From: Octopus bimaculoides
Taxonomy: Eukaryota
DNA: 46,602 nt
Direction: 5' to 3'
Assembly (NCBI RefSeq): GCF_001194135.2
Contig: NC_068987.1
Coordinates: 38,129,132 to 38,175,733, forward strand
Part shown: one piece after another, positions 1,347 through 45,300 of the stretch
Position numbering within the stretch: the stretch's first letter is position 1
Layout of the letters: each line of letters opens with the position of its first letter
Notes under the pieces: generated by a model
Database searches by the model: none
What the model saw: only the letters and a program-made list of their open reading frames with translations
Told to the model about the DNA's origin: nothing
Program-made: the position numbers and the translations under genes

Positions 1347-3975
1347 GAAAGGAGCAGGTAGAGTATCCCCATGTCCTGATTAATGATACATCTAATGATG
1401 GTGTCACAATAAAACACTGGTAATTGCGCAACCTGATAATCGCTACTTCATAATTATATGACAATGAATAAACGAAATATTGTGAATAACGGTGGTAATG
1501 AAACTGGAGCCATTGATGGTGACAGTGTTGCACCCGGCAGGCTCAGAGATTCTGGTCCGGCTCCAGCCTGTCGATATCCAGAAAGGGACCACTACACACG
1601 GCGTAGATGGAGCAAGCAAATTAATGCTGTGGTCATGGAGTGTTACTACCTGAGCAATCCGGTAGATGAACATGGTGCTCAAATCAGGGGTTACCGACAA
1701 CGTATGTATGATCATTGGAGGGAAAAGGGATTGTTTCAACTCATAGAACAAAGACTATGTGATCAAGCTAGAGCAATAAAAAAAAAATAGTTGGTTCACA
1801 GAAGTAGAGCTCGAAGTTATCAAAAGACGGCTTGGAAAATAGTGGCAGAGATAACAATGAAAATAGAGTTCTTACTAATAAAAATAATCTCATAACACAG
1901 GAAAGGAACAGTGGTAGTTTACTTGATGTGAGACATATAGATGATCTAAAAGAAGACAACAAAACTAATGGCGACATGACAGATGAACAAAAGGCAATCT
2001 ACGACAGAATAAAGGCTAGACTACAGGAGAACGATAGCGACATTATTTGCAACTTTAAAAAGGTTGACCGATGGAAGTTGAACCAAGAAACGAAAAATGT
2101 CAATGATATTCTGAAATACATCAGAACGAACAACATCACAGAAACAAATCATTTGATTATGGAAGTAAGTATTGTTATAGCAGAAAATGTGGGTGTTGAT
2201 ATCAAGAAAAAGAAATATAACGGGAGTGTCAAAAGAAAAGACCCATGGTGGAAAAAAAGAATACAGCTGGGTTAGATATACTCTCGAAGGAAATTTCTGT
2301 GAAAGAAAGGGCCTGAAAGTGATAATGGAGGAACTGAAATGGCGCCTCGTTGCAAAGAAAGCAAAGATGGTAAGATACGACCAAATAATGAAGGGTTACC
2401 ACCAGAATAAGTTATTCAGAGTAAATCAGAAGAGATTCTATAAAGAAAAGTGGAGAGTGTACAGATGAAAATTTGATACCAGATAACAATGAAAGTCAAA
2501 AGTTTTGGAGTGACATCTGGAGTTCAAGGCTACTGGATCAAAAGATTTAGTGAATGTCATGTACGAATAGCTGCGCAACTCAACACCTTCTTAAATGCCG
2601 ATCAAGTAACACCAGAGTGGTTGACATTGGGTAGGACAGTACTGTGTCTGAAAAACATCGAAAAAGGCAATACAGTAGACAGTTACAGGCCGATATCCTG
2701 TTTGTCACTTATGTGGAAATTATTAACTAGAATACTCGCAGAGTCAATGTACAAACATCTGGAAAAAATGGAGTCCTACCACATGAGCAGAAGGGTTGCA
2801 AGCGCAAGTGTAGAGGTACCAAGGATCAACTCCTGATAGACAAAACTGTACTTAGAGACTGCAAGAGGAGGAAAGGTAATCTTGCCATGTCATGGATCGA
2901 CTATCGTAAGGCGTACCACACTCTTGGATAATGGAATGTATGAACTTATTTGGTATTGCATCGAATATTGAGCGATTGCTTGGAAAAAGTAGGGCGAATT
3001 GGAGGAGGGACCTGATAGCATACGGAAGAAGTTTAGGGGCAGTAGAAATCAGGAGGGACTGCCTGTCCCCACTGATCTTTGTACTGTGCTTGATACCACT
3101 AACACTGATTCTGAGAAAAGCAAAAGCTGGGTATGTATTCAAAAGCCGCCAACAAAAAGTCAACCATTTCTTATTCATGGATGACCTCAAACTTTATGGT
3201 AAAGATGAAGCCCAAGTCGCTTCCCTCGTTGATACAGGGTATATTTTCCGTGCTGATATCAGAATGGAGTTCGGACTGAGAAAGTGTGGAGCGTTAGTCT
3301 TGAAGGAGAAGCAAAATCAAATGTATGGATGGGCTATCGATACCGTCGGGGGAGGTTATAAAGCAGATAGAAGAGACGGGTTATAAGTACTTGGGGATTT
3401 TGGAAAGGGATAAATTGATGGAGAAAGAAATAACAGAAAAATTCAAGGTGGAGTACTTGCGCAGACTGAGACTGATCCTTAGTCGAAATTAAACAGACGG
3501 AATAAGATTGAAGCTATCAACACCTGGGCGGTTTCACTCCTTAGATATGGAGTAGGGGTAATCGCATGGACAGTAGACGAACTAAACAGCTTAGACAGAA
3601 AGACAAGGAATTTGCTAACTAGATATGGGTCACTCCACCCAAAAAGTGACACAGACAGACTATATGTACCAAGAAAAAGAGGAGGAAGAAGACTTATTGG
3701 ATGCGAACACAGCATTAGAGCAGAAATTTAGAAAGAAAGGAAACTATGCTGGATCATAGAAATAGCATGCCCAGCTGACAGGGTATGCGATAAGGAAGAA
3801 AGAAAAGTCGATAAGTATGACAAGTTAGCTTGGGAGATAAAGCAGTTGTGGTCGATGAAAAAGGTAGTAGTGGTACCAATAATTGTCTGAGCCGTGTGAA
3901 CAGTGAGTAAAACCTCGAGAAGTACATGGAACAAATGGGGGCTGCAATAAGGGTGGAGCACTTGCAGAAAATAGC
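1345..3975 (+). mobile_element. Decayed R4/Dong-clade LINE (single ORF: N-terminal domain, RT, RLE) with frameshifts and internal deletions
   Basis: ORF fragments: RRWSKQINAVVMECYYLSNP...RGYRQRMYDHWREKGLF...QRLCDQARAI (N-terminus); [38 protein letters not shown] (RT); YKYLG; WIIEIACPAD...KYDKLAWEIK...VVVPIIV...EHLQK (RLE). The CCHC knuckle region is deleted near 3725. Confidence 0.92.
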
Positions 3976-4063
3976 ACGATTCTGCCAGCTCGCCGCCTTA
4001 ATAATTAAAATGATGATGATGATGATGATGATGATAATAATAATCCCTTCTACTATAGGCACG

Positions 4064-4258
4064 AAGCCTGGAATTTCTGGGGAGGGGAACAGTCAATCAC
4101 ATCGACCCCAGTACTCGACTGATTCTTAAGTTATTGACCCCGAAAGGATGAAAGACAAAGTCGACCTCGGGGGAATTTGAACTCAAAACGTAGCGGCAGA
4201 CGAAATACCGCTAAGCATTTCGCCCGGCTTGCTAACGATTCTGCCAGTTCACTGCCTT
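4064..4258 (-). mobile_element. tRNA-derived SINE, family A (Deu/Nin-like central domain)
   Basis: Minus strand has head AAGGCAGTGAACTGGCAGAATCGTTAG (A box), GAGTTCAAATTC (B box) and body GGTCGACTTTGTCTTTCATCCTTTCGGGGTC. Many copies in the window. Confidence 0.88.
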
Positions 4259-4418
4259 AATAACAACAACAACAACAACAATCATGAGGTTCGGTTTCGA
4301 TTCTGCAACAGGGCGTTCTCGATAAGAAAAGATTTCGGGTCAAACCAAGCGTTGTGAGTACAATTACGTAGATGGAAACTACGTGAAAGCCGATTTGATG
4401 GATTATAANNNNNNNNNN

Positions 4419-4620
4419 AAGGCACAAGGTCTTGAAATTTTAGGGAGGGGGACGAGTCGATTACATCGACCCCAGTGTTGCACTGGTATTCAATTTATCG
4501 ACCACGAAAGGATAAAAGGCAAAGTCGACCTCGGTAAAGGTTTAACTCAGAACGTAGCGGCAGATGAAATACCGCAAATTTTTTTCCTGGCGTTCTAACG
4601 ATTCTGCTAGCTCACTGCCT
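4419..4620 (-). mobile_element. tRNA-derived SINE, family A
   Basis: Same head and body motifs as 4064-4258, diverged. Confidence 0.85.
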
Positions 4621-4704
4621 TAATAATAACAATAATAATAATAATAATAATAATGATAATAATAATAATAATAATAATATTAATAACAACAACAACAACA
4701 ACAA

Positions 4705-4830
4705 TCATGAGGTTCGGTTTCGATTCTGCAACAGGGCGTTCTCGATAAGAAAAGATTTCGGGTCAAACCAAGCGTTGTGAGTACAATTACGTAGATGGAA
4801 ACTACGTGAAAGCCGATTTGATGGATTATA
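4705..4830 (+). mobile_element. Degenerate family B (CORE-like) SINE fragment; identical copy at 4281-4408
   Basis: GGTTCGGTTTCGATTC...TTGTGAGT...GTAGATGGAAACT resembles the family B copies at 21838-22200 and 42435-42775. Confidence 0.5.
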
Positions 4831-5998
4831 ACAGTAATTCAAAGGATACAGTCATGTTACACTGTACCACAGCTGATTATCTATGAGAATTAAAGCTACA
4901 TGTTTTGTGGAATATTCTGCAACATGCTAATTCAAAGAGTTTAATTGATCGAACGACTGAAACACTTATTGCTTCCAATATTGTACGCTACAACAGACGC
5001 AGACACGCACCCAAACCGCTTCACTTTTCTCTTCAAACTGAAACTGCCGAAATCCTATCAACTACCAGTTGGAAAAATCCTACTTTTCAAGGGCCGTTGT
5101 CTATAAAACTGACCTCATGCTATACAATGGTATCAACACGCTTCCTTTAAATCGATGACTTAAAAGAAAATTACATGCAACACGTTTTTCTGATGTAGGG
5201 ATAGGGAAAACACTACCTCCTTGTTCCGCTTCATCTAGAGACTTCACAACCCTGAAAATGTCTTCCCAATATTACCTGAAGTATCTTTGACAGATACCCT
5301 CTTTACTTGCCTGAAGCTCGTAATTGATAATTCTGCCTCCATGAGAAACTGCACATACGCCACCAGCATGTAGTATCCACTTTATTGCTGTCACCTAATG
5401 TAAGCCCTGTTAATGAAGTTCAATCTTGTCGCCGCTGATAAATCTAATATACTACCCTAGGACTAGCAGGTCCATACGCAAAGCAGAAGACACAAATTCT
5501 CGCTGTTTTGGAGATTAGAGTCTACTCATGTTGGTCACGCTAATTTGTAACTTGACACCCATGAGATTACCGTGGTTACTAAAATACCACAACCTATGGA
5601 ATGATGAGTAATTAACTGATTGACACCAACATTCTATCCTAACACGTGCAGTACCCGTTGAAAAGAACAGGTGTCGTTGATGGTGCTATTCTGTTGAATG
5701 CCAACAAAGGGATGCCAACATCCTGTCTGCGCCAGGATGATAGCATAACAACCACATGACCAGAAGCGACCAGTTGAGGCCTTACACCTAGAAGCTTCTA
5801 AATTTCTTTTACATCATCTCCTCTCTGTTCCAAACAACTGATCATGTAGGCGTCCCCTTCGCCCACGAAACTGTAAGTAATGTGGAGCCGAGTCAAACTG
5901 TTATTAAATATATGTAACTCCAACAGATTGTCTTGTGTGGTACTTTCTTCCGATTGCTCACTCACATGCGCGTGTAGTGTATGTATGCGTGTGCATAC

Positions 5999-7218: not shown

Positions 7219-7257
<39 letters not shown>

Positions 7258-8160
7258 GTCTTGATGAACAATTGTATTTACAAACAAGGAAATGTACTCA
7301 ATATATAAAGGAGAGTGTGTATATTTTAGTAGAAGCTGAAATTTATTGAATCGTAATTCTGTATTTCATCTTATCGTTTATTGTAGTGATTGAAATAGGG
7401 AAGCGGTGAGACAACATATAAGAAAAATGTACACAAACGCATCATAATAGGAGTGGTTAACAGAAAAAAGAAGTTTGCTTGGCTGCCGACTCGTACATTC
7501 ATCAACTCATTCGTCTTTAGTTCAAACGTGTGCTTTAAGAAACTATAAAGTTTTCTATTGTTATATTTGCCTGCAGCAATTTGTATATCTGCAGAAAGCG
7601 TGTTGTGCTAGTTATCTCGCATAACATGAAAAAGTCTTTACACCTCAGCCATTGAGGTGTTTATGCTTTTAAAGTACGAGTTGAAGCTATTAGAACAACT
7701 TGCAGATCTATTTGTTTCTGATAAGGAACTGGATTATCTCCCTCTGTTACTCTTGTCTAATCGATCTTTGGTGCCCTGTAATTTTGAAACCGAGAATTTT
7801 AGTTGATAGTGCATACAACTAGTCATATACAGCATTTCATGAAGAGGTGACTATCTGTCAATTTTACCTTGAAGAAGGACTCGGTCCGAAACTTTAGACT
7901 TTCTACTTTCTACGGCAATTTCTCTGTACTCTTTCTGTCAATTATTATAGATAATCATGTCCTGCAGACACTGACCACCACGAGTCACGTCACGATAAAT
8001 TTCTACTCCTGTTGAGATGTATCAGATTTAGAAGAGAAATATCAATAGTGCTGATCAGCTCATCCATGCATATGAATATGAGAGGTGCAGTGTGTGAAAG
8101 TGAATAAAGTGAACTCCTTTTATTCTTATGATTATATTTCCAAATCTCCATTTGTTGCAG

Positions 8161-8259
8161 GCTACTGGCGAGAAAACTAAAATTCAAATTACTACCGCAG
8201 CCACAGTTCAATGTTCCCCAGAACGTACTTGATCTCGTTTACGTCCAATCTTTATGCTG
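8161..8259 (+). CDS. TMC: TMC (transmembrane channel-like, TMC7-like) coding exon; start of TMC domain / TM7
   Basis: Acceptor ttgttgcag| and donor |gtaagc, phase 2-2. Encodes LLARKLKFKLLPQPQFNVPQNVLDLVYVQSLC(W), matching the TMC motif EF.I..NVL.L.Y.Q...W. Confidence 0.92.
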
Positions 8260-8461
8260 GTAAGCTATGCTTATATAGTTCGTGTACAAAGCTTCGAATC
8301 TGGACATACATACGCATATGAATAAGAAATTTGGAATATTAATGGAATAAATCACATCGAGCAAAGGAATATACTACACACTCACACACACGCACATGCA
8401 TACACATAAACACACACACACATACACACACGATGTATGTATGTGAATGGTTATATATATA

Positions 8462-8836
8462 ATTATTACATTAAGGGCTGTTACTAAAAGTAAAGCCAAA
8501 CGCTTGAAAGGGACGCTAAAGTCAAACTACTTTATCAAAATATACACACGCGCTGAAGCCGAGGAAATGAACAAAGAAAAACTTCTTTTAAAAAGGTTCA
8601 GTTGAATATCGAAACGATTTCACGGTCAACACTGTAACACTCTCTCCACTCGTCAGTGCAAACATAACCAAAAATATAAAATCGTTTCGATATGCAACTG
8701 AACCATTTTAAAAGAATTTTTTTCTTTGTTCATTTCCTCGACTTCAGCGCGTGTATATTTTTATAAAGTAGTTTGACTTTAGCGTCCCTTTCCACCGTGT
8801 GGCTTTACTTATAGTAACAGCTCTTAATGTAATAAT
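8462..8836. mobile_element. Foldback MITE with ~159-bp inverted arms
   Basis: 8462-8620 (ATTATTACATTAAGGGCTGTTACT...GAAACGATTT) is the near-exact reverse complement of 8679-8836, with a 58-bp spacer. Confidence 0.9.
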
Positions 8837-9099
8837 GTATTTTTAAAAATTATATACTTAGTATTAATTTCTTTGCCCTAATTGGTTTTACACGCTGGCT
8901 ACTAGATACAATCTTATATAGATTTTATCCTTATATTTAATTGAGATACGCGCGCGCGCGGGTGTGTATGACTGTGTATAGAATATTATATTAAAAGAAA
9001 TTCCAAATATATAAGTGTGTGTGTGTGTGTGTGTGTCGGAGTTTCTTTCTTAACAGTACAATCAACAGATATCCGACTAGGCTTTCTTTCTGCTTCATA

Positions 9100-10033
9100 C
9101 GAGGGATGCTGAAAAGTTCTCGGTTTGGGTAAAAGAAAATACAGGAGGATCTGTTAGTTATGAGTTTATTTAACATGTCCCCCTCTCAGATTGCAGCGGT
9201 CCGTCAGTTTTTCTAAGCCCAGTAAAAAGAACTCGGAAGATTGGGCCTCCAACCAGGTCGTTGTAGTAGCGATCACTTTCGAATCGAAGTGAGACTTTGT
9301 TTCCTTGAGATGTTTCTTCAATTGTAGCTTGAGTCGGAGGGGGCCAAGTCAGGAGAGTAAGGTGGGTGGTCTACCAATTCGAAGCCAAGGTTGCGTATTT
9401 TCCACAGAGTTTCATGTGTTGTGTGTGCTGGTGCATTGTCCTGCAAAAACGGCTCAGATTTCCGCAGTGGAAAGCTTTCTCATCACCAGAACGTTGTAAA
9501 TGATATATAGGCTTAGTTTCTTCTTTGTTCCTTTAATTATATGTATGGTACTTATGTCAGAATTTATCACTTTCTATTTGAAAAAGGTAAGTGAAAATCC
9601 CTAGTCTCAGCTATGACTTTAGCTGAAATCTGGCGATCCTCGAGAATCATGACGTGCACAGCGTCAGCTTTCTCCTCTATGGTGGCGGAAGTTGGCCATC
9701 CTGACCTCGAAATGACCAGTCTGAGACCTTAACACCCAGATTTTCACTGTGGGGTAAGATGGGCAGCCATCCTTCAAGTATTCCTTCATCCCGCCATAGA
9801 TTTCCACCGTTCCTTTGCCTTGCAAAAAGAAGAACTTCATGGCCGCTCGTGCTTCAGTTTTACCAAAATCCACCGTAGGAGCTGTCATCATGCGTTAAAT
9901 CTGCAAAATAGAGGAAGACATGTGATTTTTGGGGATATCTTCACCTAAATAGTTGTCCTACCTCCCCTATAAAGGCAACAGCTCTACTCTTTCGCGATAC
10001 CCTTAAAACCCGGAACTTTTCAGCACTCCCTCG
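9100..10033 (-). mobile_element. Mariner (DD34D) element, internally deleted, carrying a captured host exon
   Basis: TIRs CGAGGGA-TGCTGAAAAGTTC (9100-) and its reverse complement (-10033), with TA TSDs at 9098-99 and 10034-35. Minus-strand transposase remnants: EARAAMKFFFLQGK...PSYPTVKIW, SGWPTSATIEE...EDRQISAKVIAET, LQDNAPAH, ELVDHPPYSPDLAP, stop at 9166-9168. Confidence 0.93.
9511..9586 (+). pseudogene. TMC: Duplicate TMC exon (copy A) inside the mariner; pseudo-exon or mutually exclusive exon
   Basis: 69/76 nt identical to exon 10097-10172, retains AG| and |GTAAGT, open in the same frame: (W)LSFFFVPLIICMVLMSEFITFYLKK. No polypyrimidine tract. Confidence 0.85.
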
Positions 10034-10096
10034 TACTTATGAGTTCCATTATGAAATTAAATGTGAAAATACCTTTCTTTTTCTCTTTCTCTACAG

Positions 10097-10172
10097 GCTT
10101 GGTTTCTTCTTTGCTCCTTTAATTACATGTATGGTACTGATATCAATATTTATCACTTTCTATTTGAAAAAG
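10097..10172 (+). CDS. TMC: TMC coding exon (copy B; end of TM7 and TM8)
   Basis: Strong acceptor ctttctttttctctttctctacag| and donor |gtaagt, phase 2-0. Encodes (W)LGFFFAPLITCMVLISIFITFYLKK, matching W.G.FF.P...FY.K. Confidence 0.93.
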
Positions 10173-10251
10173 GTAAGTGAAATATTTGACAATGAATTAT
10201 TAAACATTTCGTGTGTGTGTGTGTATGTGTGTGTGTGTGTGTGTGTGTATG

Positions 10252-10283
<32 letters not shown>

Positions 10284-11436
10284 TGTTTGTGGTGATGACT
10301 CCGTCTTCTTAGATGATTATCCTCTCCTTGTGCTTCTTCGTCGTCAATGGTATTTTTGACGTTCTGATGTAACTTCTCAAAAGATTATTCAGTCCCAATG
10401 TAGAGTTGTTTTAAACATAGATCGGTCAAACATAGATCGGTCAAAAGTTGTAACTTTCAATGGATTGATCAGTTCGTTTTGTAGAATAAGCAGTTCCCCG
10501 ATCANNNNNNNNNNNNNNNNNNNNNNNNNNNNNNNNNNNNNNNNNNNNNNNNNNNNNNNNNNNNNNNNNNNNNNNNNNNNNNNNNNNNNNNNNNNNNNNN
10601 NNNNNNNNNNNNNNNNNNNNNNNNNNNNNNNNNNNNNNNNNNNNNNNNNNNNNNNNNNNNNNNNNNNNNNNNNNNNNNNNNNNNNNNNNNNNNNNNNNNN
10701 NNNNNNNNNNNNNNNNNNNNNNNNNNNNNNNNNNNNNNNNNNNNNNNNNNNNNNNNNNNNNNNNNNNNNNNNNNNNNNNNNNNNNNNNNNNNNNNNNNNN
10801 NNNNNNNNNNNNNNNNNNNNNNNNNNNNNNNNNNNNNNNNNNNNNNNNNNNNNNNNNNNNNNNNNNNNNNNNNNNNNNNNNNNNNNNNNNNNNNNNNNNN
10901 NNNNNNNNNNNNNNNNNNNNNNNNNNNNNNNNNNNNNNNNNNNNNNNNNNNNNNNNNNNNNNNNNNNNNNNNNNNNNNNNNNNNNNNNNNNNNNNNNNNN
11001 NNNNNNNNNNNNNNNNNNNNNNNNNNNNNNNNNNNNNNNNNNNNNNNNNNNNNNNNNNNNNNNNNNNNNNNNNNNNNNNNNNNNNNNNNNNNNNNNNNNN
11101 NNNNNNNNNNNNNNNNNNNNNNNNNNNNNNNNNNNNNNNNNNNNNNNNNNNNNNNNNNNNNNNNNNNNNNNNNNNNNNNNNNNNNNNNNNNNNNNNNNNN
11201 NNNNNNNNNNNNNNNNNNNNNNNNNNNNNNNNNNNNNNNNNNNNNNNNACTCCGAGAAGAGTGTTGAACCAGCAGTTAGGAGTCTATTGTTCCCTGTGGT
11301 TTTACAGCTGGACACCAATGTGGTTGGAAAAAGACAAGAGAAACAGGACATCGATGGACCTTTGATAAATAATTTGCAAATCCAACGCCAAAGATGCAGT
11401 TTCAGTTTTATATCTATCATTATTGAAGTAACGAAT

Positions 11437-11650
11437 GCGGCGAGCTGGCAGAATCATTAGCACGCCGGGCGAAATGCTTAGCGGTATTTCGTCTGTCGCT
11501 ACGTTCTGAGTTCAAATTCCGCCGAGGTCGACTTTGCCTTTCATCCCTTTCAGGGTCGATAAATTAAGCACCAGTTGCGTACTGGATTGATCTAATCAAC
11601 TGGCCCCCTTCCCCTACAAGTTTCAGGTATTGTGCCTGTAGTAAAAAAGA
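11437..11650 (+). mobile_element. tRNA-derived SINE, family A
   Basis: GCGGCGAGCTGGCAGAATCATTAG...GAGTTCAAATTCCGCCGAGGTCGACTTTGCCTTTCATCC. Confidence 0.9.
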
Positions 11651-11883
11651 TTATCATTGTAGTAATAGCATATGAACCAACCCGCCTAGAGCAAAATATG
11701 GCTGAACTTGGGTTCGTGGGGAAAGATGACATGCGTTTACATGTTTTGCAACCTCCTAATTATTTGATTTGTTTATTGTTTTTAATTTTTGTGTGACGTA
11801 GGTATGTATGTATGTTTGTTTGTTTGTACACGCATGCATGTATGTATGGAAGTTAATATGTATATAACTTTATATGTCTACAG

Positions 11884-12014
11884 TTATCAGCCTTACATTG
11901 GTGTGCCGCCTCTGTGAAACCGTACAAAGCATCTAAGTCACAGTCTTTATTTGCTTCAGTACTGATGGTGTCTTTCTTCCTATGCTGCCTTCCAATAGGT
12001 TATGTTATTTGCAA
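11884..12014 (+). CDS. TMC: TMC coding exon (KAS motif, TM9)
   Basis: Acceptor gtctacag| and donor |gtaagt, phase 0-2. Encodes LSALHWCAASVKPYKASKSQSLFASVLMVSFFLCCLPIGYVIC(K), matching C.P...F[RK]AS.S..FF. Confidence 0.92.
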
Positions 12015-12056
12015 GTAAGTATATCATATTGTTTCATTAATTTTTGCGTTGGCTCT

Positions 12057-12430
12057 AGGCGGCGAGCTGGCAGAAAAGTTAGCACGCCGGGCGAAATGGT
12101 CAGCGGTATTTCGTCTGCCGTTACGTTCTCAGTTCAAATTCCGCCGAGGTCGACATCCTTTCGGGGTCGATAAATTAAGTACCAGTTACGCACTGGGGTC
12201 GATATAATCGACTTAATCCGTTTGTCTGTCCTTGTTTGTCCCTTCTGTGTGTAGCCCTTTGTGGGCAGTAAAGAAATAAGAAACGTTAGAACGCCAGGCG
12301 AAATGCTTAGTCTGTCTTTACGTTGTTAGTTCAAATTCCGCCGAGATCGACTTTGCCTTTCATCCTTTTGGGATCGATATATTAAGCACTAGTTGTGTAA
12401 ATATTTCGGGCCTTGTGCTTAGAGTAGAAA
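12057..12430 (+). mobile_element. Family A SINE, full-length (12057-12280), followed by a 5'-truncated second copy
   Basis: Complete head, body and AAGAAATAAG tail, then a partial repeat of the body. Confidence 0.88.
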
Positions 12431-12744: not shown

Positions 12745-13465
12745 AAGGTCTGAGAATTTGGGGGAGGGGCTAGTCAATTACATCTACCCCAGTACGTATC
12801 TGGTACTTATTTCGTTCACTCCAAAAGGATGAACGGATCTTTTTTAAAACGGGGGCCACATTTTTCATTAATGTTTTACGTAGTGTTTTTGGTAGCGAAA
12901 GACTTTCAAACTTCGTATCTATTTTGTGTTATAGAACAGAAAAATATTTTTGTATTCGAATTTATTTCATGTAAAAAATTGTCTTATTTCGATAATTTCA
13001 ACCAATCACTGACAAGTATTCAGTTGTTTACATTTACTCCTTTGGCTCACTAAGCGATGTAAAGCGTATTTAATCTCCATACCTTCGTTTTATTTGCTTT
13101 TTTCATTTTAAATTTGCTTTAACCCTAACCCTAACCCTAACCCTAACCCTAACCCTAAGGTTAGGGTTAGGGTTAGAGTTAGGTTTAGGGTTAGGGTTAA
13201 TTGTTTCAGAATCGTTTGTTTATGTAGTCGGCACTTAATGTATATCGGCTGAATGGACGTCAGTGATTGGTTGAAATTACAGAAATACGACAACTTTAAC
13301 ATGGAATAATTTATGGATTTCTTTTTTTTTTAAGAAGACTAAGAGAAAAAGATGTTTTATATGACACATTCTACCAGTGTTCCAAGTTTCAAAGTGTTTC
13401 GTTAATGAAAAATGTGGCCCCCGTTTTAAAAAAGATCAGGATGAACGATAAAGTCGACCTCAGCA
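12745..13465 (-). mobile_element. Family A SINE split by a MITE insertion
   Basis: ...CCAAAAGGATGAAC at 12834 resumes as GGATGAACGATAAAGTCGACCTC at 13439. Confidence 0.75.
12835..13438 (+). mobile_element. Merlin-like non-autonomous DNA transposon (MITE) with central (CCCTAA)n(TTAGGG)n palindrome
   Basis: 37-bp TIR GGATCTTTTTTAAAACGGGGGCCACATTTTTCATTAA (terminal base mismatched on the right) and 8-bp TSD GGATGAAC. GG termini plus an 8-bp TSD fit Merlin. Second copy at 39112-39678. Confidence 0.85.
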
Positions 13466-14958: not shown

Positions 14959-15458
14959 TGGAGGGGCATTGGAGAGGTGATAGAATGTGGGACTAGAACA
15001 TGAGAGTAGAGTGTAACAATGAAACAGTAGTGGAGTGTAGAAGTGAGTGACAATGGTTTGACAGTGGAATGTGATAGCTAAGTAGCAGTGAGCAGATAAT
15101 GGTATGACTGCAGAATGACACTCAAGTGTAGCAGTTGAATAGTACTTGACTAGAGTGACAGTATTTATATTCCACATACATTCTAGGAAAATTATTGCCA
15201 AAGTAGACTTAGCATTTAATTTTTATGAGCTTTGTCAATCTTGATTGAGTAAGAATTACAGTCAAAGAAATTCTAGCAATGACTATCTCATCTATCTCAT
15301 CCTACAATTCTGCACTCCTTATTTAAAATGATGGAGAATTGGTTGTTATTTCTAGCAATCCGGGTGCTATTTGATTAAATGGGATAAACAGAATCTCCTT
15401 TCTACTGCAACTAGATATTTGACCCTTTGTCACAAAATATTTTTATTATTTATTGCAG

Positions 15459-15614
15459 AGTTCCACCATCCCGAAGTTGTGGTCCATTCCGTATTTATAA
15501 ATACATGTATGAAATTTTAACAGTTACCTTGGAGTTCTGGCCTATTTCAGCAGCAATAACAATCAGTTTTCTTACATCGGGAGCCTTTGTTCTCACAATG
15601 ATCATAGTATTACT
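15459..15614 (+). CDS. TMC: TMC coding exon (CGPF motif, start of TM10)
   Basis: Acceptor ttattgcag| and donor |gtaagt, phase 2-2. Encodes VPPSRSCGPFRIYKYMYEILTVTLEFWPISAAITISFLTSGAFVLTMIIVL(L). P.PS..CGPF is diagnostic of TMCs. Confidence 0.95.
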
Positions 15615-18823: not shown

Positions 18824-18884
18824 TATAAAGATACACAAGATATATTGATATATTACATAGAGTTTTATTCCTTTTGCTTTTCAG

Positions 18885-18963
18885 ATTGTTTCTCTATTAT
18901 TTCTATAAGAAAATTGTTTCTCAAAGTGAATCTATCAAAATACTGTCTAACAAACTGAATTCA
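18885..18963 (+). CDS. TMC: TMC coding exon (end of TM10, amphipathic helix)
   Basis: Acceptor cttttgcttttcag| and donor |gtaagt, phase 2-0. Encodes (L)LFLYYFYKKIVSQSESIKILSNKLNS. Confidence 0.88.
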
Positions 18964-20911: not shown

Positions 20912-21043
20912 GAGCGCAAGGAAAAATATTACTTCATGGTGGAAGCAAGTAAATCGTTGAAACAAGGTCAAGAAAACAGGGAACACCCAACACAAGCTAG
21001 AGAACCTGACTCAATTGAAGTGCTCGGCGAGAACAAATCTTGA
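20912..21043 (+). CDS. TMC: TMC terminal coding exon
   Basis: Acceptor tttgatag|, phase 0. Encodes ERKEKYYFMVEASKSLKQGQENREHPTQAREPDSIEVLGENKS*. ERKEKYYF matches the TMC E..DK..L motif. The six exons total 673 nt and are in frame. Confidence 0.85.
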   Translation, partial: ERKEKYYFMVEASKSLKQGQENREHPTQAREPDSIEVLGENKS

Positions 21044-21087
21044 ATCAGAAATTGCAACTATTATTAATGTTGTTGTTATGTTTATCA

Positions 21088-21122
<35 letters not shown>

Positions 21123-21135
21123 TATTGTGTTTATT

Positions 21136-21345
21136 AAGGTAATGAGCTGGCAAAATCGTTAGCATGCTGGTCAAAATGCTGAGCAGCATTTCGTCTGTCT
21201 TTACGTTCTGAGTTCAAATTCTGCTGAGGTTGACTTTGCCTTTCATCCTTTCGAGATCGATAAAATAAGTACCAGTTGAGCGCTGGTGTCGATGTAATTG
21301 ATTTACCCCTCCCTTGAACTTCTTGGCCTTGTGCCAAGATTTGAA
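21136..21345 (+). mobile_element. Family A SINE in the presumptive TMC 3'UTR
   Basis: AAGGTAATGAGCTGGCAAAATCGTTAG...GAGTTCAAATTC...CCTTTCATCC. Confidence 0.85.
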
Positions 21346-21429
21346 ATCATTGTTATTATTGTTGTTGTTAACAGTACCAATTGAAATGCCACAATTATTT
21401 TGAAAACTATAAGATGATTGGATTCATGA

Positions 21430-24659: not shown

Positions 24660-26727
24660 GTATAGATTATTTAAGACGTCGCGTGATACAATTGCGCGAT
24701 GCTGTTGATTGAAGATATTGTATCTACCGGGGGTTTGTACTGTCTGTCACAAGGATCTCAGACAGACAGTACTTTATGCAATATATATGCAGTTCCAAGT
24801 AATGCCGACTTTTGCAGTACACCTAGATTGTAGGGTATTTCTAAAGTTTCCAGATGTTTTTTTTTTTTTTCGAGTTGGATGGTATTAAACTCAATGCTCT
24901 GATGACAATAGGGACGACTTTTATGTTTGACTCACGTAGCTGTCACATCTTAATGATGTCAATTTTCAGGTCTCCATCTTTACCAATCTTTTCTCTTTCT
25001 TTCATGACGATATGTTGATCTCCTAGCACTACCACGTCGATTATTAGGCACTCTTCTTTGTTCCTCCCAAAGGTTACTATATCCGGTCTTCGGTGCTCTA
25101 ACACCTTGTCTGTTTGAAAGTCAAAGTCCCAAAAGATTTATACCTTCCCTTTTTCGTCCATTACCTTTTCCGGTGTATGTTGGTATCAAGCACTCGTATC
25201 CATACTTCCGGTATAGTAGCCAGTGAAGGTTTTGGGCTACCATGTCGTGTCTGCGCTTGTACTCTTTCTGCGCAAAACTTTCACAAACACTAACAATGTG
25301 AGACACGCTTTCAACCCTCTTCCGACACGGTATGTATCCCTCTTCACTGAGTTGGCATTCAATGCCTGATCCTGGGAAGCGATGATTAGGCTTTCAATAT
25401 TCTTTTTTAGGTCACCCTTGCTGAGCCACCTCCATGATGCTTCCTGGTTTTTTAAGTAGCCAGTTTTACAGTGTAACTGACCATGTAATTCTATGCAGAG
25501 TAGGGTTTCTTCTATCTCGTTGGCTGTTCGCGATCGGAATTCATGATCACTCTCAAGTTTATTTTTGGAAAATCTTTCTGCATTAATAGCATACTGTAGC
25601 AGGTCTTGTTTGTTGTTCACCAAATATTCTGCCATGTTTCTTCTTTCACTGCTGGTGCACTCCCTACGCTAATCAGCCCACGTCGACCTTTACCCCTCTT
25701 CATAAAGAGCCTGTGTACATTCACTTTAGGGTGGAGGGCACCATGCATTGTCATTGTCTTTCGAGTAGTGTGATCAAATTGGTTAATCTCCGCTTGCGTC
25801 CATTCCAGAATGGGTGCACTATAGCGGACTACAGCTACAGCCCATATGTTGAGATGAGTTTTGATTTCAAGAGAAGTTTGAGGCTCTTAAAATATGCAGT
25901 GATGATCTTGTCTTTCATTTCCATCTCCAGCAAGATATTGTCCAGCTCCAGGATCCCAAGGTGCTTGTACCCATCATTATCGGGGTCTTCCATTCTCTCT
26001 CCGTTTGGCAATTCTATGCCCTACAATCTTCTCTTTTCCCCCGTTTCAAAGTGAGCACCACACACTTCGAGATGCCAGATTCCATCCCTGTATCCTTGCT
26101 GCACATCTGCACAGTTTCAGCCAGCCTCTCCATTTCAGGCTCTGTTTTTGCGAACAGTTTTAAATCATCCATGAAAAGAGCGTGGATGAGACAGGGTCCA
26201 TTCTTTCTCAGCTCATAGTGCGCATTGACTTTGCGTAAGACTACAAAAAGTGGGATCATGGCTATAACAAATAACGAAGGTGAACAAGTCTCCCTGGAGG
26301 CGACGAGCTGGCAGAAACGTTAGCACGTTAGAAATGCTTAGCGGCATTTCGTCTGCTGTTACGATCTGAGTTCAAATTCCACCGAGGTCGACTTTGCCTT
26401 TCATCCTTTCGGGGTCGATAAATTAAGTACCAGTTACGCACTGGGGTCAGTGTAATCGACTTAATCCGTTTGTCTGTCCTTGTTTGTCCCCTCTATGTTT
26501 AGCCCTTTGTGGGCAATACAGAAATAAGAGTCTCCCTGGAAGATACCTCTTTTGATTGTAACCTAGTTGTTACAGAAAAGACGTGTTTTCCAACTAGGCA
26601 TGCTGCTCTTAATCAGTGCACAACGTTCTCAGCAAGTCCACACATGTCGAGTGTTTCCAAAATCCACGAATGCGGCAACATGTTGTAAACCTTTTTAAAA
26701 TCTTTCCAAGCCATGCACAAGTTTATC
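24660..26727 (-). mobile_element. 5'-truncated, decayed R4/Dong-clade LINE interrupted by a SINE
   Basis: Minus strand: NLCMAWKDF, RGIFQGD, HALFMDDLKLFAK, SLIIASQDQAL, HIVSVCESFAQKEYKRRHDMVAQNLHW, RRPDIV, LQKSALLGTAYILHKVLSV* (stop 24758-60). Confidence 0.92.
26299..26528 (+). mobile_element. Full-length family A SINE with 12-bp TSD
   Basis: AGTCTCCCTGGA at 26287-26298 and 26529-26540 flanks a complete SINE. Confidence 0.92.
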
Positions 26728-26745
26728 ATTGTTGTTGTTGTTATC

Positions 26746-26935
26746 AAGGTGGTGAACTGGCAGAATCGTTATCGCGTCGGGCAGAATGTTTAGCCGCTTT
26801 TCATACGTCTTTACCTTCTGAGTTCAAATTCAGCCGAGGTCATCTTTGCCTTTCACCCTTTCGGGATCGATGAAATAAATACATGTTGAGTGCTGGAGTC
26901 AATGTAATCAACTAGCCCCCTTGCACCAGATTTCG
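26746..26935 (+). mobile_element. Family A SINE
   Basis: AAGGTGGTGAACTGGCAGAATCGTT...GAGTTCAAATTC. Confidence 0.85.
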
Positions 26936-37180: not shown

Positions 37181-37545
37181 AATTATTTGATTTGTTTGTC
37201 TGTATTGTTAGAGTAGACAGAAACATACATTGACAGAAATTTAAGTAGAATATGATAGATACATAGACAAACAGACAGACAGATCGAGCGATTGATTGAT
37301 TGATTGCCCCTTCAATACTGCCTCTGTGGAATTTTACATTTTCTCAAGAATCAAATGTATCAGAAAAATATACAATTTCATCATGCAATTTTCAAATTAA
37401 CTGCGGAAATTCTATGGGTATTGCTAGTTTTTTATTATTATCCTTCTTGTGTCACCAAAAATTAGGTCATTTGATTCAACTATCAAATTTAGTCGTATTA
37501 TTTCCTTCCCATGCATAAGGGCCATGCTAATCTCTGTATCGAAGC

Positions 37546-37755
37546 AAGGTGGTGAGCTGGCAGAATCGTTAGTACGCTGGACGAAATGTTTAGTGACATT
37601 TCTTCTGTCCTTTTACGTTCCAAGTTCAAATTTTGCTGAAGTCGACTTTACATTTCAATCTTTTGAGTCGATAAAATAAGTACCAGTTAAGCACTAAGTA
37701 ATTGACGTCTCCACTCCCTCAAAAATGTTGGGCTTTGTGCCTATGGTAGGAAAAA
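37546..37755 (+). mobile_element. Family A SINE
   Basis: AAGGTGGTGAGCTGGCAGAATCGTTAG...AAGTTCAAATTT. Confidence 0.82.
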
Positions 37756-37959
37756 TTATTTCCTGTTCATGAGTAACAATTTAAACCCATATGTGTGCGT
37801 ACGTGCACATAAATACATACATACACACACACACACACACTCACACACACACACACACACACAGGCATATAAATATATATGCACTATACATATGTATACG
37901 TAAATACATACATACATGCAGGCAGGCAGGCAAGTAAACAGAGGGAATGACGACAGATC

Positions 37960-40290
37960 GTCAGTCAATCGTAGCTTCAACAAAAATAATATCAGTAAAA
38001 AGCATCCCAACAACAGAACAAGTTGAAAACTACTGGAGATCAACAAGGGAAAGGAATGATGAATTCAACAAAAACTGAATGGATAGACGAATTAGAACAA
38101 GAAAACTGTAAGTTTGTTGTATAAAAACTTTACAAAATTGATGGTGCAGTATAAAAAACAACCTTGAAAAAATACCAAAGAGGAAATCCTTAGGCTCAGA
38201 TCTTATAGGATATTTGTTCAAAAATTTAAACTTTTATCTGCGAGATTTTAATAACACCTATTAGAAAGGTATCAAGGGCACGTTCACGTACTCACATGGA
38301 TATCAGCGATCATTACTCTTTTAGGAGAGTGGGTTATATATCTTCAGATATACACCTAACTTTCCTATATTAAATTGGAAGAGAACTGAACGCAGAAACT
38401 CCAAACTGATCAACAACAACAAATATTTATTGTACGGTGGAAAATAAAACAGCTACCAATCGTCCGGTTTTAGAGTAGCCTGAAATGTAGATATACGGTT
38501 CCTCGAGCTTGTGTCGTTGTGGAGACAACTTGGTTCAACCACAACTCAAATGGGAGAGCCTGCTTAGACGTCTTGCTTGGTCGCTCTCTGGCTTGGTAAA
38601 GAGACAGTCTAATAGCGGGAACGCTTCGATGTTGAAAACCCACGCATGCGTGGTTAAGGATTCAGCAATGGTGCCTATGCCTTTTGGCGCCAATATGACG
38701 TCACTACACTCTTCTTAGCCCCACATATAGCCAAATAGCCAAAACTAGGTGCCTCAGTCTGTTTCTGCATGATTAATATGGTTTCGACAATATAACTCCT
38801 GAACAAGCTGGATAAAAAAAGGGAGTATGAGATTCAATTATTTAATTAATAAAATGATACAAGAAAACACTATAAAGAACTGTAGAAACTGAGAATGGTA
38901 TGACTGGACAACCAAAAACCCTTTAACAATATACGACACGGATTATCAAAACAATGCAATTAACTGAAATTCTACCACCTTTAGTAGCTGTCATCCACCA
39001 CCTAACCAAAACTTGGCGCACATCCCTACTGACAAGCGACAACGAATACATTAAATCTGACATCAAACACTACAAAAGAAGACCAGCAAGAGTGATGCTG
39101 ATATAAATGTGGGATCTTTTTTAAAACGGGGGCCACATTTTTCATTAACGAAACACTTTGAAACTTGGAACACTGGTAGAATGTGTCATATAAAACATCT
39201 TTTTCTCTTAGTCTTCATAAAAAAAAAAGAAATCCATAAATTATTCCATGTTAAAGTTGTCGTATTTCAGTAATTTCAACCAATCACTGACGTCCATTCA
39301 GCCGATATACATTAAGTGCCGACTACATAAACAAACGATTCTGAAACAATTAACCCTAACCCTAACCCTAACCCTAGGGTTAGGGTTAAAGCAAATTTAA
39401 AATGAAAAAAGCAAATAAAACGAAGGTATGGAGATTAAATACGCTTTACATCGCTTAATCAGCCAAGGAGTAAATATAAACAACTGAATACTTGTCAGTG
39501 ATTGGTTGAAATTATCGAAATAAGACAATTTTTTACATGAAATAAATTCGAATCCAAAAATATTTTTCTGTTCTATAACACAAAATAGATAAGTATACGA
39601 AGTTTGAAAGTCTTTCGCTACCAAAAACACTACGTAAAACATTAATGAAAAATGTGGCCCCCGTTTTAAAAAAGATCCTAAATGTGACCTATCAGTGGTT
39701 GGTTGTGTCTGATCTTAAATCAGAAGCAGAGGTTTTCATTATAATAGCTTAGCATCGATGCTTACTAGCGAGAAATTATTGAGCTGGCATATTCAAAAAT
39801 GTCACTGGCCCTTTCTGTCGCTTTTGTGGTATACACAGAGAAGAATCAACCACCAGGCCTTTGGCTATGGTTCGTTTAGTCTCGACTGAGTACACTAATA
39901 GTTTTGTTAAACTTGGTTAGTACTGACACTGGATCATATGCCGTCAGTTTCGACTTCCATATGAAAAGAACTAGAACTAAAGTGATCAGGCTATTGAGAC
40001 TATTAGACCAAATACTGTGATGAAACATCATAGGAACAAAACATTCCAGCAGACTGAAAAAAAAGACCTCTCTGAAAACATTCGAAAAGCAGAGCAAATA
40101 TAAGGACATTGAAACAAACAGAGATCTCAAAAATACGGCATCGAAAACCAGCTAATGTATCTGTGATCATTGGGACTTTGTGGGATGATATCAAATGGTG
40201 CTCTTAAACACTATGATGAAATGCCAGGAAAATCAAAACCTCCAGAACAACAAAAAATTGGTCCCATAGGCATAGACCACATTCTAAGAA
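37960..40290 (+). mobile_element. Highly decayed R4/Dong-clade LINE fragments interrupted by other insertions
   Basis: IPTTEQVENYWRS, KRKSLGSDLIG, and an RLE end (KYKDIE...SVIIG...HILRKSLS) across frameshifts. Confidence 0.6.
39112..39678 (-). mobile_element. Second copy of the telomere-palindrome Merlin-like MITE, inverted relative to 12835-13438
   Basis: GGATC...GATCC TIRs and 8-bp TSD TAAATGTG (39104-11 and 39679-86). Shorter central CCCTAA/TTAGGG array. Confidence 0.9.
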
Positions 40291-45149: not shown

Positions 45150-45300
45150 TAATATAAAGTTGGTTTCAAATTTTGGTACAAGACCAGTAAGTTCGGTGGG
45201 GAGAGGCAAGTTGATTACATTGACCTCAGTGCTCAACTGGTACTTATTTTATTGACCCCATAAGGATGTAGGGCAAAGTCAACCCCAGCAGAATTTGATA
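45150..45300 (-). mobile_element. Degenerate family A SINE
   Basis: TGGTACTTATTTTATTGACCCCATAAGGATGTAGGGCAAAGTCAACC. Confidence 0.7.

Follow-up and report, generated by a model that had tools for sequence, protein, structure and literature searches.

A mariner element of Octopus bimaculoides carrying a copy of the neighbouring TMC exon, probably acquired by template switching during break repair

Among DNA elements that bear host gene fragments, the Pack-MULE, CACTA and Helitron carriers of plants are multicopy, have demonstrably transposed from their parents and are often transcribed. Filler DNA of the classic kind sits at a deletion junction itself. For animals, Tan et al. (2021, Nat Commun 12:4280, PMC8277862) described 370 Pack-TIRs (transposons with terminal inverted repeats, TIRs, and captured host sequence) in 100 genomes, 115 of them TcMariner elements. 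In that survey 56.9% of the analysed intrachromosomal cases lay no more than 15 kb from the parent, mostly no more than 5 kb; microhomology was present at a breakpoint in 67.6%; and the median gap was 4.6% of transposable element (TE) length, small gaps being argued to mean internal breaks. Here we describe a mariner copy from Octopus bimaculoides that encloses a copy of an exon of the TMC (transmembrane channel-like) gene in which it resides (NCBI RefSeq assembly GCF_001194135.2, contig NC_068987.1, positions 38,129,132 to 38,175,733). The window, meaning the whole stretch analysed, is 46,602 nt of scaffold with 10 N-runs, and all positions given below are positions in it. The element is best read as a single-copy Pack-TcMariner of the type described by Tan et al., an instance previously unlisted of a known class; cephalopods are not mentioned in the main text of that paper or in a part of its supplements (PMC8277862).

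The mariner occupies 938 bp (9098-10035, minus strand) and lies antisense within an intron of the TMC gene, which runs along the plus strand of the window. As an earlier note made from the sequence alone had proposed, one pair of terminal inverted repeats and TA target-site duplications bound it. The repeats are ~30 nt long and 90% complementary; the one at the transposase 3' end (9100-9127, minus strand) lacks 1 nt that the other has and aligns, as element positions 909-938, with positions 1351-1386 of a full-length relative, L001, while the one at the transposase 5' end (10006-10033, minus strand) was placed by repeat search and by alignment to the same relative. The TA dinucleotides are read directly at 9098-9099 and 10034-10035, and L001 also has TA at both ends. 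Inside these limits, positions 9506-9596 form a 91-nt direct repeat with 10092-10182 just outside them (83/91 identical, BLAST E 5e-32 within the window). On the plus strand the copy spans TA.AG with its AG at 9509-9510, a whole 76-nt pseudo-exon at 9511-9586 with an open frame (WLSFFFVPLIICMVLMSEFITFYLKK), and GTAAGTGAAA at 9587-9596. The parental sequence at 10092-10182 has the same layout, with the acceptor at 10095-10096, the exon at 10097-10172 and the donor GTAAGTGAAA at 10173-10182. Copy and parent are 586 nt apart, in cis and in direct orientation, and the parental exon lies 61 nt past the right TA, which is the 63 nt past the inverted repeat that the earlier note had given. Its central observation, that a single TIR-bounded and internally deleted mariner holds a ~90-bp copy of the adjacent host exon together with its splice signals, is thus upheld. 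Within the copy, intron bases flank the exon on either side, so its template was DNA and not mRNA.

On the sequence comparisons made here, the exon at 10097-10172 is a genuine TMC exon, in frame with its neighbours. Its peptide, (W)LGFFFAPLITCMVLISIFITFYLKK, matches positions 70-94 of Pfam TMC (PF07810) at E 6.2e-5 and 23.9 bits, just under the gathering score for what is a fragment of 26 amino acids. The upstream exon (8161-8261, plus strand; ..PQFNVPQNVLDLVYVQSLCW) is colinear with cuttlefish TMC and ends in TG, leaving a W codon whose last base G10097 supplies and G9511 in the copy could supply just as well; the downstream exon (11883-12014, plus strand) reads LSALHWCAASVKPYKASKSQ..., and further plus-strand exons lie at ~15458-15613, ~18880-18963 and 20912-21040. 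Five of the six exons placed in the window map directly on the TMC of Sepia pharaonis (P0045), colinear with its residues 467-620 and 647-669, and the sixth (~18880-18963) was placed not on Sepia TMC but via an O. bimaculoides protein model, UniProt A0A0L8I5I5 (P0195), to whose corresponding part the TMC exons of the window are 100% identical. An exhaustive protein search of representatives gave 425 TMC-like matches. A word-indexed protein search with a 58-aa two-exon TMC peptide returned no match, and the matches of a 154-aa TMC query were limited to a cuttlefish-like transcript (L005) and the UniProt entry from O. bimaculoides.

The direction of copying is supported by the states of individual residues. 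The exon at 10097-10172 retains G and A residues that are conserved in cuttlefish TMC, where the segment inside the mariner has S and V; because the latter bears derived states at conserved TMC residues, it is the copy and the exon the donor. The two differ at eight positions, one intronic and seven exonic. Of the exonic substitutions, six fall within five changed codons and one is synonymous, with G>S, A>V and I>E in a transmembrane stretch among them; the longest identical run is 35 nt. The pseudo-exon still matches Pfam TMC at E 0.032, with 15.2 bits against 23.9 bits for the parental exon. The substitutions in the copy fit neutral decay.

The same comparison bears on the age of the capture, which the earlier note had presented as a near-exact copy caught in a snapshot. 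With 91% identity and 8 differences the copy is not near-exact, and its divergence from the parent (8/91, 8.8%) is close to that of the element from its relatives' consensus (61/644, 9.5%), both figures having wide confidence intervals. The capture is therefore old rather than fresh, a relic of roughly the insertion's age.

Placing the copy within the mariner required relatives. L001 is a 1518-nt Tara Oceans contig (TARA_SAMEA2731665 scaffold_12721; source organism metagenomic) whose mariner at 89-1386 is 1298 bp long, TA-flanked, apparently intact and ~80% identical in DNA to octopus copies; three degenerate relatives come from octopus genomes, L002 from O. vulgaris and L003 and L004 from O. 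sinensis. Junctions were mapped from BLAST segments against L001 together with a MAFFT fragment alignment to all four; a global pairwise alignment of the junction zone to L001 was discarded, its path having been forced spuriously through the deleted middle. Read as the reverse complement, element positions 1-441 (window 10035-9595) correspond to L001 89-561, positions 442-531 (9594-9505) to the exon copy, positions 532-567 (9504-9469) to L001 582-617 (IIHNILDMRKLS), positions 568-586 (9468-9450) to L001 ~984-1003 with 16/20 matches, and positions 587-938 (9449-9098) to L001 1014-1386. The arms beside the copy have the same orientation, are colinear and share one TIR/TA pair, and their divergence from the relatives' consensus is similar (30/363 and 31/281).

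The exon copy replaces only ~13-17 nt of the 1298-nt mariner (L001 ~563/566-578), that is, ~15 nt or 1.2%. Right after it mariner sequence resumes, as an island at 9469-9504 (minus strand) that matches L001 over 36 nt (86%, E 2e-6) and L003 over 38 nt (84%). The earlier note had taken the insert to be the join between the two transposase halves; given the island, the large internal deletion forms a separate junction. That deletion is of the size expected in the note (~0.4 kb, including the first catalytic D): it measures 367 bp against L001, and its junction at 9464-9470 (L001 ~617/620 to 983/986) lies 36-45 nt beyond the insert. In L001 the missing segment is bracketed by CGC, a likely microhomology that now reads CAC, and a 10-nt deletion (L001 1004-1013) follows ~20 nt past it. 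The 367-bp deletion is not present in the three octopus relatives, L002-L004.

The junction between exon copy and mariner at 9591-9598 carries 5-7 nt of microhomology, GTGAAAT (reverse complement ATTTCAC, the 'G I S' codons of the transposase), plus one extra A. The host reads GTAAGTGAAATATTT here, the mariner family (reverse complement) GCG[T/G/A]GAAATCCCC and the element GTAAGTGAAAATCCC; at the 'G I S' codons the relatives read GGGATTTC[A/C/T], and the alignment bears out the earlier reading that the motif is shared by the host intron start and the transposase. The microhomology is 7 nt if the serine codon of the progenitor was TCA, as in L002, and 5 nt with the states of L001, L003 and L004. 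In a simulation that drew random breakpoints in the real flanks and the real relatives, at least 5 nt arose by chance with P 0.006 and at least 7 nt with P 0.0006-0.0007, values that favour capture by template switching at microhomology, as had been suggested.

An in-situ origin of the copy, through a template switch in the course of break repair, is highly probable. Whether the trigger was a break inside the resident element, not its excision, stands at about even chances in our judgement. What the sequence shows is the anatomy, the colinearity, the microhomology at the junction, the identity of the donor and the divergences; the break, its position, the order of events and the repair pathway are what we infer, as follows. 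A DD34D mariner would have inserted at a TA in the TMC intron, antisense and 61 nt upstream of the exon. Later, a double-strand break would have occurred within the resident mariner, between family positions ~563 and 579, and a resected 3' end may have primed, with little or no homology, on the same molecule's exposed strand, at a point ~0.59 kb distant and immediately upstream of the exon's acceptor. Once 88-91 nt had been copied, comprising the AG, the complete 76-nt exon and 10 nt from the start of the following intron, the strand would have come free and annealed with the opposite end of the break via the 5-7-nt GTGAAAT microhomology. The net outcome, ~15 nt of mariner swapped for a direct exon copy, would be an example of the "transposition-independent gap filling" route to a single-copy Pack-TIR. 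The 367-bp deletion, with its CGC microhomology, and the 10-nt deletion, no more than 60 nt from the insert, may belong to the same messy repair or be separate later deletions; since capture, the copy would have decayed neutrally and the element remained immobile. A local break is favoured because the points at which synthesis would have left and rejoined the mariner are only ~15 nt apart, a spacing that a free template switch in sister-templated gap repair does not explain.

Several observations weigh against a local break in a resident element. The junctions of the 367-bp and 10-nt deletions are just 36-60 nt from the insert, and so close a grouping suggests a single complex event with several switches, of the kind seen when gap repair after excision is aborted. 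An internal break also predicts a waiting time after insertion, and 8.8% versus 9.5% shows no clear one; since the copy is about as diverged as the element, the capture is not clearly later than the insertion. At the second junction (~9503-9510) the microhomology is 0-3 nt and the exact position ambiguous. A breakpoint at a GGC/GCC microhomology there, with the AG present by chance, is a less parsimonious alternative: past the start of the exon, 4/5 bases agree with the host, for which the chance is ~1.6%. Finally, the whole evidence comes from one gappy short-read scaffold.

The clustering of junctions and the similar ages of capture and insertion keep in play a different trigger, in which the transposase excised the element and repair from the sister chromatid by synthesis-dependent strand annealing was aborted with several template switches. 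Synthesis would have switched from mariner to mariner across 367 bp, from mariner to the flanking exon and then back, making deletion, 36-nt island and insert one event. A span of 150 nt in the 938-bp element does hold four junctions (9449/50, ~9467, ~9505 and ~9597), two or more of which have microhomology; a capture of about the insertion's age could date from the family's active period; and microhomology-mediated internal deletion is reported for Tc1/mariner (PMC3814204). Yet a spacing of ~15 nt is unexpected if microhomology set the return point anywhere in 1.3 kb (~3% by chance), Tan et al. expect large gaps biased to the termini from excision-triggered events (PMC8277862), and scattered deletions of 17, 15, 12 and 7 nt elsewhere in the element imply that deletions accumulate independently here. 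We therefore regard excision as possible but rather unlikely. The earlier appeal to abortive gap repair with template switching holds for the template switch; given the small gap, the excision trigger is somewhat less favoured than an internal break.

Two further explanations were considered. A short-read assembler might have misplaced an exon-like stretch inside the mariner: the scaffold is gappy, copy and parent share the identical 35-nt run, and a gap-flanking exact duplicate occurs elsewhere in the window (4257-4408 = 4680-4831). However, the eight differences from the parent argue against a duplicated read pile, mariner sequence stands on both sides of the copy with overlaps (0-7 nt) too short for assembler joining, and 7219-10504, which holds mariner, exon copy and parental exon, is a single gap-free contig, all of which makes such an artefact very unlikely. 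An origin of the mariner halves from separate insertions, or an older tandem exon duplication later hit by mariners, is scarcely credible, with nothing to commend it except that two exon-like copies stand 586 nt from each other. Homology ends after 91 nt, on which ground a tandem duplication of 586 nt was rejected. Two independent insertions, which the earlier note had itself named as fatal to its reading, were likewise rejected, and are effectively refuted by alignment to the relatives' consensus: the similarly diverged arms are colinear and in one orientation between a single TIR pair with its TA duplication, and only ~15 nt of family sequence (L001 ~563-578) is missing between them at the copy.

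Set against the described systems, the octopus element has the marks of a Pack-TIR, both TIRs and the target-site duplication being kept around an internal non-TE segment that duplicates host sequence. It also has those of gap filling, with the parent 586 nt away in cis, a microhomology of 5-7 nt (P <= 0.006) and a TE gap of ~15 nt (1.2%). The resemblance to the Pack-TcMariner elements of Tan et al. (PMC8277862) extends to intact ends, single copy, a cis parent less than 5 kb away, breakpoint microhomology, small TE loss and exonic capture. With 115 Pack-TcMariner among 370 animal Pack-TIRs, and typical cases of the same anatomy (PMC8277862), the earlier remark that gene-fragment capture is rarely shown for mariner no longer applies. 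Unlike typical Pack-TIRs (PMC8277862), the octopus case has a donor that is unusually near, at 61 nt past the element's end and 586 nt away from the copy, and the captured segment is a whole exon with both splice signals, in sense orientation and in the intron directly upstream of its parent. At ~9% divergence it is also older than the "young" set targeted by Tan et al. (PMC8277862).

Filler DNA offers a second comparison: as reported for P element gap repair, Ac/Ds-del (PMC3260210) and rice DNA transposons (PMC4423477), a short nearby stretch is likewise inserted at a repair junction by template switch and microhomology. Unlike classic filler, the octopus filler and the large deletion form separate junctions, 36-45 nt apart. 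Miniaturisation of Tc1/mariner elements into MITEs (miniature inverted-repeat transposable elements), as reported in PMC3814204, resembles the present case in its internal deletion between short direct repeats, here 367 bp and CGC triplets, and differs from it in that the octopus deletion derivative gives no sign of amplification: it has no second copy in the window, and the octopus relatives lack the deletion. With plant Pack-MULEs, CACTA elements and Helitrons the octopus transposon shares a host gene fragment; those carriers are multicopy, transposed from the parent and often transcribed, whereas the octopus element occurs once in the window, next to its donor.

What the copy has done since capture is a question that fits either origin. 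It could be functional, exonised as an alternative first, poison or mutually exclusive TMC exon, and several features would suit such a role. The copy is sense-oriented and occupies the intron that immediately precedes its parent; it has an open frame, an AG and a donor, AAG/GTAAGTGA (AAG/GTAAGT), identical to that of the parent over the compared bases. As each exon measures 76 nt, including the two together would shift the frame, an arrangement enforcing mutual exclusivity. The UniProt model A0A0L8I5I5, moreover, begins at M9545 in the copy and uses the copy's donor. Against this, the 3' splice site of the copy has no pyrimidine tract (40% pyrimidines, versus 95% at the real exon), the G>S, A>V and I>E changes fall in a transmembrane stretch with a corresponding loss of Pfam score (23.9 to 15.2 bits), and the supporting gene model is itself suspect. 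On balance we consider exonisation improbable.

The suspicion concerns the start of that gene model. In A0A0L8I5I5 (window 9545-10172) the first residues, MVLMSEFITFYLKK, belong to the captured pseudo-exon. A splice then joins 9587 to a mariner-internal acceptor at 9973-9974 (9587>9975), after which antisense TIR and intron (ATALLFRDTLKTRNFSALPRTYEFHYEIKCENTFLFLFLYR) are read into the real exon, and the genuine upstream exon at 8161-8261 is omitted. The antisense mariner TIR and intron so translated (ATALLFRDTLKTRNFSALPRTYEFHYEIK...) have no TMC homology, and the model's 53 N-terminal residues have none outside the pseudo-exon part. This N-terminus of 53 residues, assembled from pseudo-exon, antisense mariner and intron, is probably spurious, a prediction artefact.

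The mariner itself has left two transposase remnants, both on the minus strand as the earlier note had read them. The N-terminal one (9595-9891, MMTAPTVDFGK...AKVIAET) matches HTH_48 at E 5.6e-5 and has a 17-nt deletion and a frameshift; the C-terminal one (9166-9468, KRRGKLS..FLQDNAPAH..YSPDLAPSD..stop) matches DDE_3 at E 1.2e-4 and keeps the second and third catalytic D, with frameshifts, the 10-nt deletion at ~9449/9450 and further small deletions. Both matches, on short fragments, are just under the Pfam curated cut-offs. With its first catalytic D deleted and its frame broken, the copy is dead and non-autonomous. Assignment to the DD34D mariner class is based on the TA duplication, the ~30-nt inverted repeats and the remnants of a Mos1-type helix-turn-helix and catalytic domain. 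The full-length relative found by protein search and encoded on L001 (P0001, 356 aa, with HTH_48 PF17906 and Transposase_1 PF01359) has 34 residues, by count, between the D of QDNAPAH and the last D of APSD, which is the DD34D spacing.

Among the relatives, the only intact transposase open reading frame (ORF) found is that of the Tara Oceans contig L001, not an octopus one, in what is a very small sample; the called ORFs of L002-L004 are truncated (132-179 aa), and these copies are ~15% from consensus in a three-copy sample. The translated transposase remnant of the window is 77% identical to a protein of the mantis shrimp Oratosquilla oratoria. Marine animals seem to share the family widely, a hint of horizontal transfer. 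The earlier note had envisioned the element as an exon-shuffling cassette that could be mobilised in trans. In the 46.6-kb window the chimeric element has one copy, adjoining its donor, one of its inverted repeats bears an indel, and the octopus relatives have the truncated ORFs and divergence just given; within that window, mobilisation as a cassette is without support and is speculation.

The surroundings of the locus are rich in repeats. (GT)n microsatellites flank the mariner/exon pair at 9015-9036 (~60 nt left of the element) and 10210-10290 (~38 nt right of the exon), and no link between them and the rearrangement was found. The same TMC intron holds, at 8462-8836, a ~375-bp palindromic element that resembles a foldback or MITE-type insertion: it is 82.6% self-complementary across 384 aligned positions, with nested inverted-repeat arms of 90 nt at 92%, 57 nt at 86% and 44 nt at 93%. 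A SINE-like (short interspersed nuclear element) repeat of ~150-270 nt occurs in at least 10 copies on both strands, 70-87% identical and several of them within TMC introns (4034-4272, 4420-4688, 11415-11658, 12054-12281, 12279-12399, 21068-21359, 26298-26529, 26723-26922, 37545-37760 and 45161-45298). Two inverted copies of a ~600-bp repeat with an ORF-like motif (RGPHFSLMFYVVFLVAKDFQTSY) lie at 12835-13437 and 39113-39678 with 91% identity, and a degenerate retroelement at 1440-3900 (plus strand), whose ORF fragments match RVT_1 weakly (E 2.6e-4 and 9.4e-3, under the gathering score), the sole Pfam result among the neighbouring ORFs, is probably a decayed non-LTR (long terminal repeat) retrotransposon. 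The exact duplicate at 4257-4408 and 4680-4831 is 152 nt long with 100% identity, and one copy abuts the N-run at 4409-4418; we take it for a probable artefact of scaffolding or of the gap, and for a sign that the assembly has local errors.

The locus provides a clean, fully mapped example of how templated break repair would have given a resident DNA transposon a whole host exon, splice signals included. The case comes from a cephalopod and leaves knowledge of the mechanisms unchanged. Its three states (empty site, mariner, and mariner with exon copy and/or deletion) would make it a marker for the order of events across Octopus. Should the copy prove to be spliced, break repair inside a transposon would be a route to tandem exon duplication, and the locus may thus serve as a natural test of whether sense-oriented exon duplicates turn into alternative exons.

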